From NCBI GenBank assembly GCA_025786725.1, contig JAHLTZ010000018.1:434001-498000 (forward strand): a stretch of DNA of 64,000 nucleotides, read 5' to 3'. The notes below the pieces were generated by a model. It had not been told where the DNA came from and did no database searches. It saw only the letters and a list, made by a program, of their open reading frames with translations. Position numbers and translations under genes: made by a program. Source of the DNA: Syncephalis fuscata S228. Lineage: Eukaryota; Fungi; Zoopagomycota. Shown here one piece after another: positions 903 to 32,694 of this stretch (the first letter of the stretch is position 1; each line of letters opens with the position of its first letter).

Positions 903-1506
903 ACATTCTATTTATTATATGTTTTAATATACTTTACTCATTCCCCTCATTGCATTATATGCACTATAACTTCAACATTGCTTTATGTGCTTTCTTACCG
1001 TACATTCATCATTTTATATACCATTCTATACTCGCATAGTTTTCCTCTACCCAAAACTACTTTTATTTTTGTTCTAGCATCATTATTAACAAATGTTGAC
1101 TAATTCCGTTCATTGATCATGCATATATACGCAATAACTTCAACGGGGCAATATTCATTTCACACAATATATTATTTATATTGTATATTGTTTTATTGTC
1201 TAGTAACTATGCGCTAGATATTACAGTTGCTCTTCTTGTTCTAGCTTTATTATTAACAAATGTTGACTAATTCCGTTCATTGATCATGTATATATGCTCA
1301 TTAGCTTGAACATTGCTAATCTCGTTCAATATTGCATATTTATTATAATGTTTATCATTTTATTATATACTGGCTATACGCTGTCTATAGCCGTTGTCGG
1401 TATGGTTCTAACTCTTTTATTAGCAAAATTGATATATCGCAGTTTGTTCACTGAGTTATATGATATAACAAACAATATGAATATGAACAAAGTTATGTTT
1501 TCTTAA
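903..1506 (+). repeat. Degenerate ~167-bp tandem repeat (~3.5 copies)
   Basis: Anchor GTTCTA at 1071, 1238 and 1405. TTATTAACAAATGTTGACTAATTCCGTTCATTGATCATG is identical in two copies. ATAACTTCAAC at 966 and 1134. Confidence 0.7.
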
Positions 1507-2223
1507 GAATATTTATAAATAAATCAAATCATGTCAATTAGTTATGATTTTAATGTTAATCAAGCAAAGTGACGGGTATACATAGTAATAACACATAATG
1601 TGATGATATATGCATACTGAATAATAAATCTATGATGATGAGTATTTGATGATTGATATCACTCACCACCCACTATTATGTTCAATAAATTAGATGTTAT
1701 TAATTGTAGCTATTTAACCACCGGATCACATTAAATGACTAATAAATTGTTTAATGTAAAATAGTTATCTTTATTTAATTAATAAATAATGTAATATATA
1801 CAATCTATAAATTGAATGGCATTGCATATAAAAAGACTATGAACAAATTGAAATACAGATGAGGAATTGTTCAAGTGGTGGAATAGAACAAAGAATAAAG
1901 ACTAATAGCATAAAAGCAAATATAATTATAAATTTATTATATAAGCAACAGTGTTTATTTTCAAAAAAAGCAGGAGACAGAGTAAAACAGCTCTTCATTC
2001 TTAAAAGTGCGCTATTTTCTATATAATATAATGTCCAATCAATGAATGGCAATTAATATGGGGTAGAAAGCGGGTACGAAAGTGCCGAATAAATCATGTG
2101 ATTTGTTGTAAATAAAGAATAGATCGTCGTATTTGGTGTAGATGTGTGTGCGGGGTCATCGACTTATTCTGCTACTACTATTACCATCGCTGTTACAACA
2201 AGTGCTATTACTATTACAGCGCA

Positions 2224-5221
2224 ATGTTTCATAAGATACTTGTAGCTAATCGAGGCGAGATTGCTTGCCGTGTGTTAAGAACGTGTCGTCGTCTTGGTAT
2301 TGCTACAGTAGCCGTTTATTCTGATAGGTAGAGTGGAATAAAACGGTAAAAAGCTATGACTGCCCAAACTAACACTACGACGCGACTATATTTTATTATT
2401 TATTATGACTAAAGTGATAAAGAAGCACCGCATACAAAATTAGCTGATGAAGCAGTTTATATTGGCCCATCACCGGCAACTGAATCCTACTTGCGAGGCG
2501 ATCTTATTATTGCTGTAGCCAAACAAACTGGCGCCGATGCTTTACATCCTGGTAAGCGGGAATTAAAAGTGTATACTAATTAATAATATTGATGGCATTA
2601 TATTTGTGTAATATATATATATGATATATGATATATAGGCTATGGATTTTTATCTGAAAATGCCGAATTCGCTCAAGCATGTATGGATGCCAATATTAAA
2701 TTTATTGGGCCAAAGCCCAGTTCAATTAATGCTATTGGCGATAAGGTAAATAAATGAATAAACAACGACTATTATTAACTATTGACTGTTAATTATAGAT
2801 CAGTGCTAAACAATTACTGAAAGCAAAAGCACCCAAAGTACCATTAATACCTGGTTATAATGGAGATGATCAATCAAATGAACGGCTGGTTACTGAAGCT
2901 GTTAATATGGGTAATTATTATTATTATTGCTATTATTATTAGAATGTTAAGTATTAAGTAACAATTTAATAGGATTCCCTGTTTTATTAAAGGCATCGGC
3001 AGGCGGTGGTGGTAAAGGTATGCGCATTGTACGAGAAAAGGAACAGTAAGTCATCAATACATGAATAGTATACTGTATTAATACTAATAATGCCTAGCCT
3101 AATGGAAGAAATTGAATTGGCCAAAAGTGAAGCACGGCGCTCATTTGGATCAGATGCATTGCTTGTTGAGCGTTATTTTGATCGTGGCCGTCACATTGAA
3201 GTAAGGAAATTAGTATGGATGTTTATCTCAATATAAGTTACTCATAATTAGTATTCTATTAATATTGCTAGATCCAAATTATTGGTGATCAGCAAGGCAA
3301 TGTACATCATATCTATGAGCGAGAGTGTACTATTCAACGACGACATCAAAAGATTATTGAGGTAAGTTGGCTATAATATTTGTCGTAAATATAACTAAAA
3401 TATATAGTTAGGAATCACCCTCGCCTATTATGACTGACTCGCTACGTTCGCGTATGACTGATGCAGCCATTTGCATTGGACAGCTGATCGATTATGAAGG
3501 TGTTGGCACGGTTGAGTTTATTGTCGATGATGCAACACATGACTTTTTCTTTCTTGAAGTAAATACACGCTTGCAGGTTGAGCATCCAGTGACTGAATCG
3601 GTGACAGGGTTGGATTTGGTTGAATTACAAATTCATGTAGCAGCGGGTAATTAGATAATAGGAATACATTATTGTAGCAGTAATGACAAGTATAATAATT
3701 ATATAGGTGGCTCGCTTAAGGACACATCAGTGCCTACATTGCCGATCAAGGTTGGTGGTCGATAGGGCGATTCATTAGTGTTTATTAAATAGTGTATGGA
3801 TAGGGATATGCTATGGAATGTCGTTTATATGCGGAGGATCCATCCCAGAACTATATGCCATGTGTGTAGTAAATAGATTGTAGGATATTGGTTTACTTAT
3901 ATGGTTTATTTTAAACTAGGTTCGGGTCCAGTATTACTATGGCAGCCATCGTCATTGCCATTTATTCGTTATGATACGGGTGTGGAGACCGGCAAGTATA
4001 CACATTATTGAGTAATATGCTTACTTATTAAGCATATAGGCTCAATGGTCACTATTTACTACGACCCGATGATTGCCAAAGTGACCGTATGGGCGGAGAC
4101 ACGCGATTTGGTGATTAAACGCATGGAGCGTGCTTTACACGAAACGTTATGTCTAGGGCTGGTGACCAATCAAGACTTTTTACTTGCTGTATTGCGACAT
4201 TCTAAATTCAGACAGGGCCAATTTACAACACAATTTGTTGAACAGGAACAGCAGCAGCTATTGGCACTAGAGCCGATCACTGATCAGTATGTGACAAATA
4301 AGAATACACTTCACCCACTGGCCCAAGCTACTTTGGCTGCTCATTTATGGCGCTGGTATCAACGAAAACAAGCTAAGGCACCACTAAGTTTTATTTCTTC
4401 GGGCTATCGCAATGTTCGATGGCGTCCACAATATGATCGCTATACGACGGCCACTATTGGTGATATACAAGCAGCACGTCAATGGGAGATCGCTTATACT
4501 CACTTTGGACAAAGGGGTGCGCTAAAGTGTTGGTTACCGCGTCTTGTTCCCAAAGAAGAAACGGCGCCTCTTGGGCGGGTGGCTTCAATGCAACATCAAG
4601 AAACGCAACCAGCAATTACGGCGGAAATCATTAATGTGACTCCATTAGGTGGTAAGTAACAAGGCTGCTTTAGATATACATTTATTAATCATTTATTAAT
4701 TACTAGATAATCAGAGTTTATTAAGATGTTGTATTGGTATGGCTCTAAATGATTTTATGGCAATTGTATAACTGATTTTATTTTATAGATGGCGTTCAAC
4801 GCAACTTTTATATTGTTGAAGACACGAGTTTGAAGGCCAATGTTAAAGAAGAACGTCGTACGCTATGGTTAAACTGTGCCTCACTAGGCCTAGTTAGCGT
4901 AAGAGTTGGTGAGCATAATCGACTTGAATCGCATACATCGGCCGCTGAAGATTCTGGTAAGCAGTATTGATAATTAGTTAATAAAATAGAGCTTAATTGA
5001 CTTGATCATTAGTGTTGGCATATACAACTCAGATGCCGTGCCGTATTCTACGCTTAATTGCTGCCAATGGCCAAACAGTCAAGCCGGGTGATACTATCCT
5101 AACTATGGAGTCAATGAAGATGGAAACAAAGCTGTTGGCTAAACATGCTGGCACAGTTCATCTACTTGTTAAATCAGATCAACTTGTCGCTGCCGGTGTT
5201 CTATTATGTGAGATCAAATAG
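2224..5221 (+). CDS. Biotin-dependent acyl-CoA carboxylase alpha subunit (biotin carboxylase + BCCP; methylcrotonyl-CoA carboxylase alpha-like), multi-exon
   Basis: [58 protein letters not shown] and the biotin-lysine motif ESMKM. More than 10 short introns. Confidence 0.92.
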
Positions 5222-5489: not shown

Positions 5490-5966
5490 TTAGTTTTTAT
5501 CACTATTCCAGTTGTCTTCAGTCAATGGACATTTCTTGAAATCAGTATTGAGAACTACCCCTGAAAAGTCTTGAACGATAAGACCAAATGGCTTGCGGTT
5601 GGAATCACGAGCCTCTTCAATGGATCCTTTGACTGCAACGTAAATTGCAGTTGTATCAGCTAACTCTGCTTTATCAATACTGCAGCTCTTAAGATATTTT
5701 CCCTTCTCAAGACTGTCTTTAACAGTGGCGATGACAGTGTTTGTCGCATCGTTTATATCAAAAGTGGGTTTATAAAACTCATCTTTCTTTGGAAGGCTCT
5801 CGATATTATCAAACATCAACGATGCCAATGTTAAGGCATGCATTTCAGTTAATTTCGCCGACTGGCTTGTTGGCGGTTGGGTTTGAGGATTTGGTAGACC
5901 AAATACTGTAGCGAGACTTGATAAACCAACAAGGCAAACACCCAACAAAATAGTAGTGAACTTCAT
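5490..5966 (-). CDS. Small secreted protein, 158 aa, unknown function
   Basis: Intronless ORF with hydrophobic signal peptide MKFTTILLGVCLVGLSSLATVFG-LP and two Cys in the mature part. Confidence 0.8.
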   Translation of the reverse strand: MKFTTILLGVCLVGLSSLATVFGLPNPQTQPPTSQSAKLTEMHALTLASLMFDNIESLPKKDEFYKPTFDINDATNTVIATVKDSLEKGKYLKSCSIDKAELADTTAIYVAVKGSIEEARDSNRKPFGLIVQDFSGVVLNTDFKKCPLTEDNWNSDKN

Positions 5967-12911: not shown

Positions 12912-13509
12912 GTATGGGTGTTTAGTTGTATCTAAAAGTGATAAGAAAAAGAAAGTAAAATAAATAAATAAAAGATATGAAAGAAAATAGAATAGCTCCA
13001 ATTTAATAATTAATAAATAGACTTATGTGATTCTGTGTCAAAAAACCAAAATTAACATTCTTTACTTGATCAAACTACACATTTGCTGTTCTACTAAACA
13101 TAAAGCTGGATGATGAGTGACATTAAATATCAAACTATAATGCTTTGAATACTTTACAGTAACAATAGTATGGATTAACATTTATTTATTATACTTTGTT
13201 TTAAGTAACATAAAAATACTATTTAACATTTATTAACACTAATATCAAATATTGAAAATAGCGCAGACTGGTTCATCTTTACTTGCATTAATCAGAATTG
13301 ATATGGCGCCGCTTCAACAAATAACAATTTTTAGTATTAAAAACAGATCGACGGTTTAATATTTGAGTTATAAATCTTTCTTGTACTTCAGTTTAAGGAT
13401 AGGGGCATAAAGTGAAATGGCTCTGTATTAATAGAATGTGATGGTGATTCAATTTCACCTTTTTTATTTACGCGCTGGTTAATCGTTTTTTACTTGTTTT
13501 TTAATCGTA

Positions 13510-29721: not shown

Positions 29722-30041
29722 TTTCTGTTTTCAGCTAATGCCACGGGTAGCCGATTTAATAAAATTAATTTATAAAAATAGATTTTGATACATTTGGTTA
29801 GTTATTTTAAATCAATAAAAGTACGGTTGTGGTTTACTATCTTTTATTTCAATCAATTGTATATTATGTGTGTGTGTCTGCATACCACATATAAAGATGC
29901 TAGAAGAAGCAAAAGTGCTTTTTTAGTACATCGTATATACAACATTGCATTATGCAATGCATCATTTATAATCATTTGCTTTTGATGCATGCTGTAACAA
30001 TCTATTTATTGACGTAATATTACGCTCTTGTGGTTTTATTG

Positions 30042-30167
30042 TACTTTGACTTCCACATTTTGAGTTTCAAAGTAAAATTCGTTTCAATTCAAGTCAATTG
30101 TAACAAAATGGCCGTAGGATGGCCACTGTTACTACTGTTATGCATGACAAAACACAAGTAGTGTTTT
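30042..30167 (-). ncRNA. Candidate omegaRNA scaffold (structured region just 3' of the Fanzor-like stop codon)
   Basis: Three consecutive stems in plus-strand coordinates: AAAACAC/GTGTTTT 30149-30167; GTAACA-aa-ATGGCC/GGCCAC-TGTTAC 30100-30132; TACTTTGA/TCAAAGTA 30042-30074. The position matches where Fanzor omegaRNAs are encoded. Confidence 0.45.
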
Positions 30168-30409
30168 TATTTGATTACTTGAAATTCACGAGGCCGGTTA
30201 TTGTTGTTGTTGACCATGTGTAGAAAGATTGATAGAATATTAATAAAAGCCATTGATCGCGATTCCATGCCAGTTCGCAGTTGTTATTGTTGTTACTACG
30301 TACAGTGTGGTTTCCTTGCGTCCGAATGGTCTCTTCTATTTTCCAATATTCTACTGTTGCATTTTGGACATATCTGCGATGTAAAATACTCGTCTATGGT
30401 GACAAAAAG
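30167..30409 (-). mobile_element. Decayed Fanzor/TnpB-like nuclease 3' fragment, copy 2
   Basis: Minus strand: LFVTIDEYFTSQICPKCNSRILENRRDHSDARKPHCT** / NNNNCELAWNRD / MAFINILSIFLHMVNNNNNRPREFQVIK*. This is the RuvC-II Glu, zinc finger, RuvC-III NRD and terminal RPxxF. Confidence 0.85.
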
Positions 30410-30698
30410 GTAGAACAGCTAGCATTTCTGATATCAACTTGATAGGCACAGTTGCTTTGCCGATTATTAATAAAGCAAATGACTTTATAACAATACACTA
30501 CAATTGTGCTTGTTGGTTGTTACAATATATATATTTATTAAATGTTATAAAATATAAAACTAATCACTGTTGAATTAGATGCCATACATCAAATACAGCA
30601 ATAATTAGCTATCGTATTAAACGAATGATGAGTTAAGATGATATACGCATAAATTGTTAGACTGAAATTCCACTCGTACCGATGCTAACATTGTTACA

Positions 30699-32694
30699 CT
30701 AGCCTTGCTCTACTTCTACCAGCATGGCACGTCTCCACCAACGACGACGACGTGTATAAGCACGTAGCCAAGGAGCAGATCTCCATCCCGACCACGTATT
30801 ATCTGCATAGCTCCAGCCATCCATATCTATCAAATGCGGCGACGTATCTTGATCCACTTGCCATTGTGTATCCACCCATTTCCATCCGAGGGTCTGCTGT
30901 GTAGCTGTGTTGGCACTATTGCCATTGCCTTCGTCTTTATCATCTACAGCCGCTAGATCTGGACTGCCTAATTGACCACTGACCATGCCCAATTGTCGTT
31001 TGGGCAATAGATCAACGGTAGTGGGCGCTGGCAGCGTAAATAATTCACGGGACGGTGCTTCATGCCCTTCCTCGTCCGTCCTATCAATAATCGTTCGTTA
31101 GTCAGTAAATAATAGCTATTATTGTGTACATTTAATGCACTTACCATGGATATGGATCAAATGGAAGAAATCGAGTTAACCAACCAAGTCCTACCCACCA
31201 GCGTTGATGCTCAAGTAGAATAATACGATGGGTAAGACCTGTATGCATTGCTAGCATTGCCGCTTCATCTTCCTCATCGCTATCTTTAATGTAATCATGT
31301 GTGCTGTAGTTAGAATATTGATCAGAGTCATTGCCACTAGCTGATCCAAAATCTCTTTTCTTTTCTAATGAAATAGAATTAAACAATGGATCATCTATAT
31401 CTGAACTAGAGCTTGAAGCAGGTAGTTCTTCACTAAAACCAGCTGAGCCGTTGATAGAACGTGGATGGGATTGTAGCTTTGCTTGAGCATCAGGACAAGT
31501 GGTATCCTGTGGCTCATCGCGCGATTCTTCTGGAATAGGCAGCATTGAATCAGTGGCCGTTGACTGGCCCACTGACGAGAAAGTAGAAGAGGTCGTTTGG
31601 CTGGAGGGACGTGATCGGCGGCGTTGTCGTAATGACGAATTACGGCGCTTTGTCTTGCTTCCAATTTGAGCTGCCAATGAGGCTGCTTGAATAAGCGGTG
31701 CATACAAAGGATTATCCTGGTGTGCATTTAATCGCCGTTGGAATCGCGAAATAACTCGTGGAAGCCAGCTAGTAGCAAAACGATACATAAACTGCATCCA
31801 CGGACTACGCCAGCTAATTAATAGACCACCTAGTGCTGCTACGGACCAGCGTGCGCCCAATTGGTAGTTGAATAAACACCAGGGCGGATAAGAATAAAGC
31901 CACCAGCGTAGAATATCACCAGCTGCCAAATCAGCCCGTGCAGCCAATCGTTTCGACTTTAATCGTAGTCGTCCAAGACGTACATTAAGCGCATCTAATG
32001 TACGAGAGACGGCGCGTAAATCGTCAGCATCATCCCGTATTGGTGATGATGATACAATGGGCGCACCATTAGCATCTACGGCAGTATGTGGTGCAGTTGG
32101 TTTTATTTGGCGACGTTGCCAATACCACCATAGAAATGCGCCTGCCACTATCCAATGAAGCATATAAATGTATAGCCATTCAGATGCTGCACAAGCAATC
32201 CACCAAAATGCTAACACTAACAGCGAACGAGATGGTTGTTTCCATTCAAGAATATCGAGTAGCCAATCCACTGCACGGAAAACCGGTGCTAATTCAAGTA
32301 GAAGACGTGTGAGAGCAAATGGAGTGCCAGCCAACGTTGCAGGCAATCGTGTATGAGAAGAGGACACTGAGGATGTACTGGTTGTACTGGCAATAGTTAA
32401 TGTTGTTGTGGCAGGAGTAAGTGTAGTTGCAGTATTGACATCCTCAGAAGATGCCATTGTTGTTGCTACTGTTGCGGCGGCTGCTGCTGCTGCTGCCATA
32501 TTACGTAGTTGACTATGCACACTACTGCTACTACTGCTACTACTGCTACTACTAGCACTGCTACTACGATTACTGTTAGTGTCGTTTATTTGATGGCTAG
32601 AATCGCTCTTATTCACGGTCTTTGGTTCTGCCGTAACGTGAATATCTGAAAGTTGTTGAGTCGTAGAACGTAATAAGTAAAGGTCAAATGGCAT
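30699..32694 (-). CDS. Pex23/Pex30-family peroxisomal membrane protein with C-terminal dysferlin domain, 2 exons
   Basis: Reticulon-like TM region (ILEWKQPSRSLL, LLISWRSPW). DysF: EHQRWWVGLGW, WKWVDTQWQVD, DGWSYADNTW, YTRRRRWWRRA. Confidence 0.88.

Follow-up and report, generated by a model that had tools for sequence, protein, structure and literature searches.

A truncated mini-transposon copy with a decayed Fanzor C-terminal remnant in the fungus Syncephalis fuscata

The window, by which we mean the whole stretch of 64,000 nucleotides analysed from Syncephalis fuscata S228, contains on its minus strand, at positions 30031-30481, a truncated copy of a mini-transposon, an ordinary repeat relic. 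A host gene (30699-32694, minus strand) lies directly upstream. A preliminary description, made from the letters alone, had placed a Fanzor nuclease relic followed by three stems at 30042-30409; this was the right place, with a span slightly too narrow at both ends. In a DNA search of the genome, 30432-30031 was homologous to 40 scored copies at 79-89% identity, with sharp edges. A further block of 50 bp, 30481-30432, matches farther upstream in other copies, and beyond approximately 30481 the homology is gone. Other copies extend about 330 bp farther upstream than the 30432 edge, and this left part of the full unit, left inverted repeat included, is missing from the window copy. The features of the locus are as follows.

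30031-30481, minus strand: 5'-truncated mini-element copy of subfamily A1, delimited by sharp-edged homology to sister copies
30170-30479, minus strand: Fanzor1 C-terminal coding remnant, read across three frames
30431/30432, minus strand: 26-bp deletion relative to sister copies, in which the two matched blocks are separated by about 26 additional bases
30311-30316, minus strand: +1 frameshift relative to open-frame subfamily copies such as L016, common to a subset of A1 copies
30253-30254, minus strand: -1 frameshift between the NRD motif and MA(S/F)INI, found in 15 of 18 aligned sequences
30167-30169, minus strand: stop codon TAA ending the remnant frame
30149-30167, minus strand: stem S1, 7 bp, 94% paired across copies, which is no better than column shuffles
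30095-30137, minus strand: stem S2, 16 bp (4+6+6) with a 2-nt bulge, a lineage-specific hairpin insertion of about 37-42 nt
30042-30074, minus strand: stem S3, terminal hairpin, 8+3 bp, whose 3' arm is the inner part and core of the right inverted repeat and whose 5' arm is a subterminal complement
30031-30060, minus strand: right terminal inverted repeat, a 20-nt core (30041-30060) and 10 terminal nt ending ...AACCA, with homology stopping at about 30031

The coding remnant retains the segment ahead of the TNB domain, the rearranged RuvC-II Glu, the first CxxC, a degenerate second half of the zinc finger and the RuvC-III NRD motif. The frame of 30479 yields the stretch before the zinc finger, FALLIIGKATVPIKLI, and continues past the deletion as SEMLAVLPF; the frame of 30418 reads VTIDEYFTSQICPKCNSRILENRRDHSDARK, that of 30393 reads HTVRSNNNNNCELAWNRDQ, and that of 30283 reads MAFINILSIFLHMVNNNNNRPREFQVIK up to the stop codon. 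The peptide had been described as interrupted by two frameshifts and two stops. The frameshifts are genuine, whereas the stops, TAG TAA at 30298-30293, are a wrong-frame artefact, the homologous frame reading R-S-N-N. Across the site of the -1 shift, the intact-frame copies L010, L011 and L016 read ...RDHMASINI. Approximately 100 C-terminal residues are left in the window copy and approximately 140 in the family, and neither the window nor any of the family copies examined has the RuvC-I (DPG motif), WED and REC domains. The encoded protein is dead, as had been proposed.

The spacing of the catalytic motifs is preserved. In the window, IDEYFTSQICPKC sets the Glu six residues ahead of the first CxxC (E-x6-CxxC), and C-ELAWNR-D, in the frame of 30393, sets the RuvC-III Asp six residues past the last Cys (C-x6-D), inside the expected range of 4-8. 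Together these match the pattern by which Fanzors and TnpBs with the rearranged RuvC-II Glu are defined (Yoon 2023, PMC10711439), and the earlier reading of DExxTSxxCxxC as a RuvC-II signature is correct for Fanzors, matching the rearranged-Glu position of that study. In subfamily A1, the second CxxC is down to a single Cys and an Asn run replaces the third zinc-finger Cys; L009 and L018 have kept the second half of the finger, as CNNC and CNDC, respectively.

Profile searches agree with this identification. The piece 30299-30418 matches Pfam PF07282 (Cas12f1-like TNB) with E=4.4e-5 and 24.0 bits, which for the window piece alone is just below the cut-off of 26.3 bits. Open-frame sister copies, at 80-88% DNA identity, exceed that cut-off (best E=7.5e-10), all 11 aligned relic reading frames match the family, and the genome holds at least 87 matches, the window site included, with homologous copies reaching 42 bits. 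The eleven frames, drawn from three subfamilies (alignment A1), served as the basis of a family profile. Its best PDB matches are the C-termini of the G. theta Fanzor1 (E=1e-3) and the P. parasitica Fanzor1 (E=5e-3), followed by TnpB, SpuFz1 and Cas12 proteins. Against a library of 1.8 billion representative proteins, the same profile obtained 763 matches, the best (E=2e-22) being TNB-domain proteins of Mucorales; the closest named protein matches come from Thamnidium elegans, Rhizomucor pusillus and Cunninghamella blakesleeanus, all members of that order. The proposed identity as a Fanzor/TnpB C-terminal relic is thus borne out by both the PF07282 match and the Fanzor1 structures found with the family profile. 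Since GtFz1, PpFz1 and SpuFz1 are the top PDB matches and the carrier has terminal inverted repeats and is not of the IS607 type, the relic can be assigned to Fanzor1 rather than Fanzor2. The chance that a zinc-finger-like match in AT-rich DNA explains the resemblance is negligible, and this reading was rejected: the window piece by itself falls under the Pfam cut-off, but the scores of homologous copies, the profile E values and the conserved motif spacing speak against it.

The preliminary description held that the genome carries or carried a Fanzor-derived family, which is the case, the family being large and numbering hundreds of copies. It missed that the relic is a truncated piece of a gene-less mini-element bounded by inverted repeats and not a decayed full-length gene. 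In the assembly searched (29.4 Mb in 371 contigs, about 37% G+C), a first look gave 581 DNA candidates for the relic, 40 of which were scored. Alignment of 18 sequences yields a full unit of about 760-790 bp with inverted repeats at both ends. Its left end reads ...CTACTGTACTTTGACTCCCACATTT, and its right end is the complement of this followed by about 10 nt ending AACCA in this subfamily. The 20-nt repeat core has 390 genome matches with at most 3 mismatches (193 forward and 197 reverse) versus 1 for the reversed control, and many opposed pairs of cores lie 470-800 bp apart. Sister copies are 12-20% diverged from one another.

Within the unit, homology to Fanzor coding sequence sets in some 225-270 bp from the left repeat, at a point corresponding to residue 428 of 568 in the homolog P0002, 734 of 863 in the Rhizomucor protein and 899 of 1037 in the Cunninghamella protein; the matches to P0002 in the fungus's own genome span residues 428-568 only. 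No upstream (N-terminal) Fanzor homology was found for 23 full-length homologs in the loci examined, which included eight 10-kb stretches. Of the Fanzor gene, every copy examined has no more than the last ~140 codons, together with the right end. A short unit, terminal inverted repeats, a high copy number and no working coding capacity together characterise the family as a non-autonomous, MITE-like mini-element. In subfamily B the tail measures 280 nt and the protein sequence differs, but the terminal motif, TCAAAGTACAGTAGCTCC, is the same, so that several Fanzor lineages rode one kind of carrier transposon. Because the -1 frameshift is common to 15 of the 18 sequences and the frame is open in A2, A1 multiplied once its frame was already broken; it was thus the ends of the element, and not the protein, that allowed it to spread.

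A scan for target-site duplications across 14 complete units revealed no register that stands out, and imperfect 7-bp direct repeats were seen by eye at single copies (6/7 in L038 and 5/7 in L024). Beyond the ...GTAGCTCC terminus, many independent ends show seven variable bases and then a conserved TAA (L003, L008, L009, L012, L014, L016, L038, L040 and window positions 12999-13008). This pattern may reflect a preference for certain target sites, a motif adjacent to the transposon or a so far unrecognised outer part of the repeat. The window also harbours a second relic at 13195-13425 (plus strand), a degenerate subfamily-B tail with 73% identity to the L003 tail and a mutated terminal motif; nearby, at 12950-12998, an inverted-repeat end, ...AATAGCTCC, is present in decayed form. 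Neither place showed a detectable coding remnant.

A search of the genome for full-length copies uncovered no intact gene and one fuller, decayed locus. Residues 1-430 of P0002 had no match in the genome, and residues 1-780 of P0011 and 1-950 of P0015 gave only marginal matches, of about 45 residues just ahead of the TNB domain. PF01385 likewise matched nothing in the genome, a null that carries no weight because this family also misses full-length Mucorales Fanzors. A profile of the RuvC-I region, built from 15 full-length homologs (alignment A3), matched exactly one genome locus, on contig C317, with E=4e-11.

G000:C317:731000-737000, about 2050-4400 of that stretch, minus strand: L051, the only match to the RuvC-I profile

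L051 has an open 212-residue frame containing the RuvC-I (DPG) motif, ...AVDPGISQVFTAAYG, and its pre-TNB segment ends ...IDEYLSFR. Its zinc-finger/RuvC-III region is broken by four in-frame stops with no canonical intron signals. L051 is a more complete, though decayed, Fanzor gene, and its subfamily is not that of the window relic. A family-A-like relic is also present at 5695-5919 of the same stretch. Thus, an intact Fanzor was not found in the 371-contig assembly with these queries, which does not prove its absence.

Downstream of the stop codon, the three stems that had been described are present as S1, S2 and S3, as is the minus-strand peptide before them. The 137-nt tail folds on the gene strand with an MFE of -32.9 kcal/mol (z=-3.39), an energy that none of 200 shuffles reached. 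For the opposite strand z is -1.32, and for the tails of nine other copies it ranges from -0.3 to -3.3. With the pieces in place and a fold of this quality, the original observation is real and beyond chance. Conservation of the stems across copies, which was examined in about 18 A1 tails and 9 B tails, holds in part. The pairing of S1 persists, and A1, A2 and B all have a hairpin close to the right terminus, on its inner side, whose inner arms differ (GACTCC/GGAGTC in A1 versus TCCCCA/TGGGGA in B), whereas S2 is absent from L014, L038, L039, L044b, the A2 copy L010 and several split genome matches. Given its absence from sister lineages, S2 can be regarded as a lineage-specific palindromic insertion; the insertion is precise, one sub-lineage having it and others being without it.

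Covariation was null for the window's three stems: 89.1% of cells pair versus 89.5% in column shuffles, with a score of 0.106 against a shuffled mean of 0.116. The RNAalifold consensus is weak as well (-7.4 kcal/mol, with a covariation term of -0.35). The power of this test is low, since neutral decay of transposon copies gives the same null either way. The stems have simply been inherited among the copies. No counterpart hairpin was found beside the left repeat, and a hairpin confined to the right end is easier to reconcile with an RNA, or with a DNA feature specific to one strand, than with a transposase site, which would be symmetric. A search of 29800-30700 against Rfam at a permissive threshold returned only a chance match to CrcZ (E=0.54), and neither sequence similarity nor a common inverted-repeat motif links the tail to the 3' flanks of the closest full-length or partial homologs, Rhizomucor pusillus L049 and Thamnidium elegans L050.

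One public run, X1, covers the region. Its label is 'RNA?', and it is available in the form of contigs, from which strand, ends and small RNAs cannot be read. The run is RNA at least in part, as a mismatch-free 1.8-kb contig skips the 64-nt intron at 31080-31143. The upstream host gene is expressed and is spliced exactly at this predicted intron. Its transcript contig ends at 30686, about 13 nt past the stop codon, so that, on this contig, the relic is apparently not in the 3' UTR of the host gene. No contig of at least 99% identity lies on the window relic in this one RNA-like run. Positions 30170-30437 are covered by contigs of 90-95% identity from other copies, which continue A2-like where they leave the window sequence near 30200. 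Their summed depth is high, at 1000-3000 versus 276 for the neighbouring host gene, and some members of the family, apparently A2-like, are therefore well represented in the run. The tail is almost uncovered. For the window locus, the run provides weak evidence against RNA and none in favour of it.

The tail should be viewed in light of what is known of active Fanzor elements. The SpuFz1 gene of Spizellomyces lies between inverted repeats of 30 nt, and its omegaRNA consists of a 75-nt scaffold, reaching from the stop codon through the right repeat, and a guide of 14-15 nt from the flank (Saito 2023, PMC10432273). The same genome contains 134 ORF-less 'ghost' loci that retain the repeats and the omegaRNA region (PMC10432273), and Fanzor1 scaffolds go down to two stem-loops in size (PMC11423790). 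The tail coincides with the stop-to-right-end region where Fanzor omegaRNA scaffolds are encoded, and its placement 3' of the ORF in the preliminary description agrees with PMC10432273. From this position and the Spizellomyces analogy, the ancestral element likely used the tail as its omegaRNA scaffold.

We consider it highly probable that the relic belongs to an old, non-autonomous, 'ghost'-like family that originated by internal deletion of a Fanzor1-carrying transposon and was amplified in trans after loss of the frame, with the window copy immobile and 5'-truncated. The founding deletion would have occurred within a transposon with terminal inverted repeats, and the founder would have retained the left inverted repeat with about 250 bp of left-end sequence, the last ~140 Fanzor codons and the right inverted repeat. 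A putative transposase recognising the inverted repeats may then have amplified the family in trans to about 200 or more copies, at a time when the Fanzor frame would already have been broken. The three stems would correspond to the right-end region of that transposon, by position the omegaRNA scaffold region of active Fanzor1 elements, where the guide would come from the flank past ...AACCA. The window copy today does nothing specific: its left end is gone, its protein does not work, no transcript of it was detected, and the assembly yielded no intact nuclease that could partner it.

It is possible, although we lean against it, that the tail never encoded RNA and that S1-S3 are DNA-level features of the right end, namely the repeat, a transposase-binding partial copy of it and a palindromic insertion, the Fanzor fragment having been kept only through the position of the founding deletion. 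Several observations favour such an origin: the 3' arm of S3 is the inverted repeat, while the 5' arm looks like the repeat end copied in inverted, degenerate form, S2 is an insertion, covariation is null, the RNA contigs barely cover the tail, and the family was amplified without a working nuclease. However, the hairpin occurs only at the gene-proximal end, although symmetry would be expected of a feature that does no more than bind the transposase; folding is better on the gene strand than on the complement; and the same region encodes the omegaRNA in every characterised Fanzor1.

The opposite extreme is that the block from the 3' coding segment of Fanzor through the tail to the right repeat was kept because it is a self-contained omegaRNA gene with a promoter inside the remnant, hundreds of orphan guides having been selected, or still being transcribed, after loss of the nuclease. 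We regard this as quite unlikely. If it were true, these would be fossil guide-only OMEGA elements that outlived their effector, or guides for a horizontally arriving Fanzor. It is still less probable, and indeed very doubtful, that the window locus itself works, producing an omegaRNA, with a guide from the flank (30030 downward), for loading onto an intact Fanzor from another locus. In favour of this, the copy still has its stop codon, tail and right repeat, the fold is better than that of every shuffle, and RNA contigs of related copies run across the coding remnant. Against this, no intact Fanzor was found and the sole RuvC-I locus, with its four in-frame stops, belongs to another subfamily; no contig of at least 99% identity represents the copy and its tail is nearly uncovered; and the copies are mutually diverged by the 12-20% given above. 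The earlier proposal that this copy retains a functional scaffold, able to serve an intact copy as a guide, is not supported by these results, nor by the null covariation, the absence of S2 from sister lineages and the nature of S3, in which the right inverted repeat pairs with a subterminal complement.

Composite elements of about 7 kb each, several copies of one layout, occur at L041, L046 and L047 (G000 contigs C157, C318 and C57, respectively) and are not accounted for by the simple mini-element picture. Each has a 3'-truncated unit of about 660 bp on the left and a complete unit in direct orientation, 88-94% identical to each other. The interior of about 5.7 kb has no long reading frame and includes an array of about 2 kb of 81-83-bp tandem repeats. 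Such direct repeats around a long interior would suit a retrotransposon whose long terminal repeat is the unit, an exceedingly improbable reading: inverted repeats delimit the unit on its own, and the majority of copies stand alone as repeat pairs spaced 470-800 bp; in the long elements, the left copy has lost its 3' end; and the interior has a tandem array and no frame the size of a reverse transcriptase. It was rejected on the inverted-repeat structure and the missing reading frames.

As a non-autonomous family derived from a Fanzor1-carrying transposon, the elements resemble the ghost Spu-1 of Spizellomyces punctatus (PMC10432273) in several respects. Both are short (about 550 nt there and about 765 nt here) with inverted repeats of about 30 nt, both outnumber gene-bearing copies (134 loci there and about 195 here, taken as half of the 390 core matches), and both have kept the region from the stop codon to the right repeat. 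Unlike ghost Spu-1, the family described here carries about 140 codons of a dead Fanzor, no active parent gene was found in its genome, its omegaRNA is putative, and its repeat and tail sequences are unrelated. It shares with PpFz1 (9cf0, P. parasitica, Mucorales), GtFz1 (9cer, G. theta) and SpuFz1 (8gkh, S. punctatus) the C-terminal TNB zinc ribbon between the rearranged RuvC-II Glu and the RuvC-III Asp, but lacks their WED, REC and RuvC-I parts. Fanzor1 has been known in Mucorales since Bao and Jurka 2013, who described the MCi, ROr and PBl families of Mucor, Rhizopus and Phycomyces (PMC3627910). As in those families, Fanzor1 sequence lies here inside DNA transposons with terminal inverted repeats moved by an unrelated transposase. 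Those families encode full Fanzor proteins, whereas none was found here, and some of them are MuDR-like with 9-bp target-site duplications.

ORF-less ghosts that keep the right end were already known (Saito 2023); what sets this family apart are the dead coding segment that is carried along, the apparent loss of all intact parents, and the order of events, with gene death preceding amplification. The family provides a second, independent case in which ORF-less elements with a Fanzor right end far outnumber gene-bearing copies. Because amplification followed gene death, the inverted repeats are what such elements spread by, and the nuclease is not required. For genome editing, the window locus offers no new nuclease or guide RNA. 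For annotation, the hundreds of short 'Cas12f1-like TNB domain' matches in this genome should be read as mini-transposon relics, not genes. Many of the 763 profile matches in the protein library are likewise proteins of 80-300 residues with little beyond the TNB domain, including several from Thamnidium elegans (P0001 and P0159-P0163 among the entries), and such short TNB-only database proteins may be gene calls on similar C-terminal relics in Mucorales.
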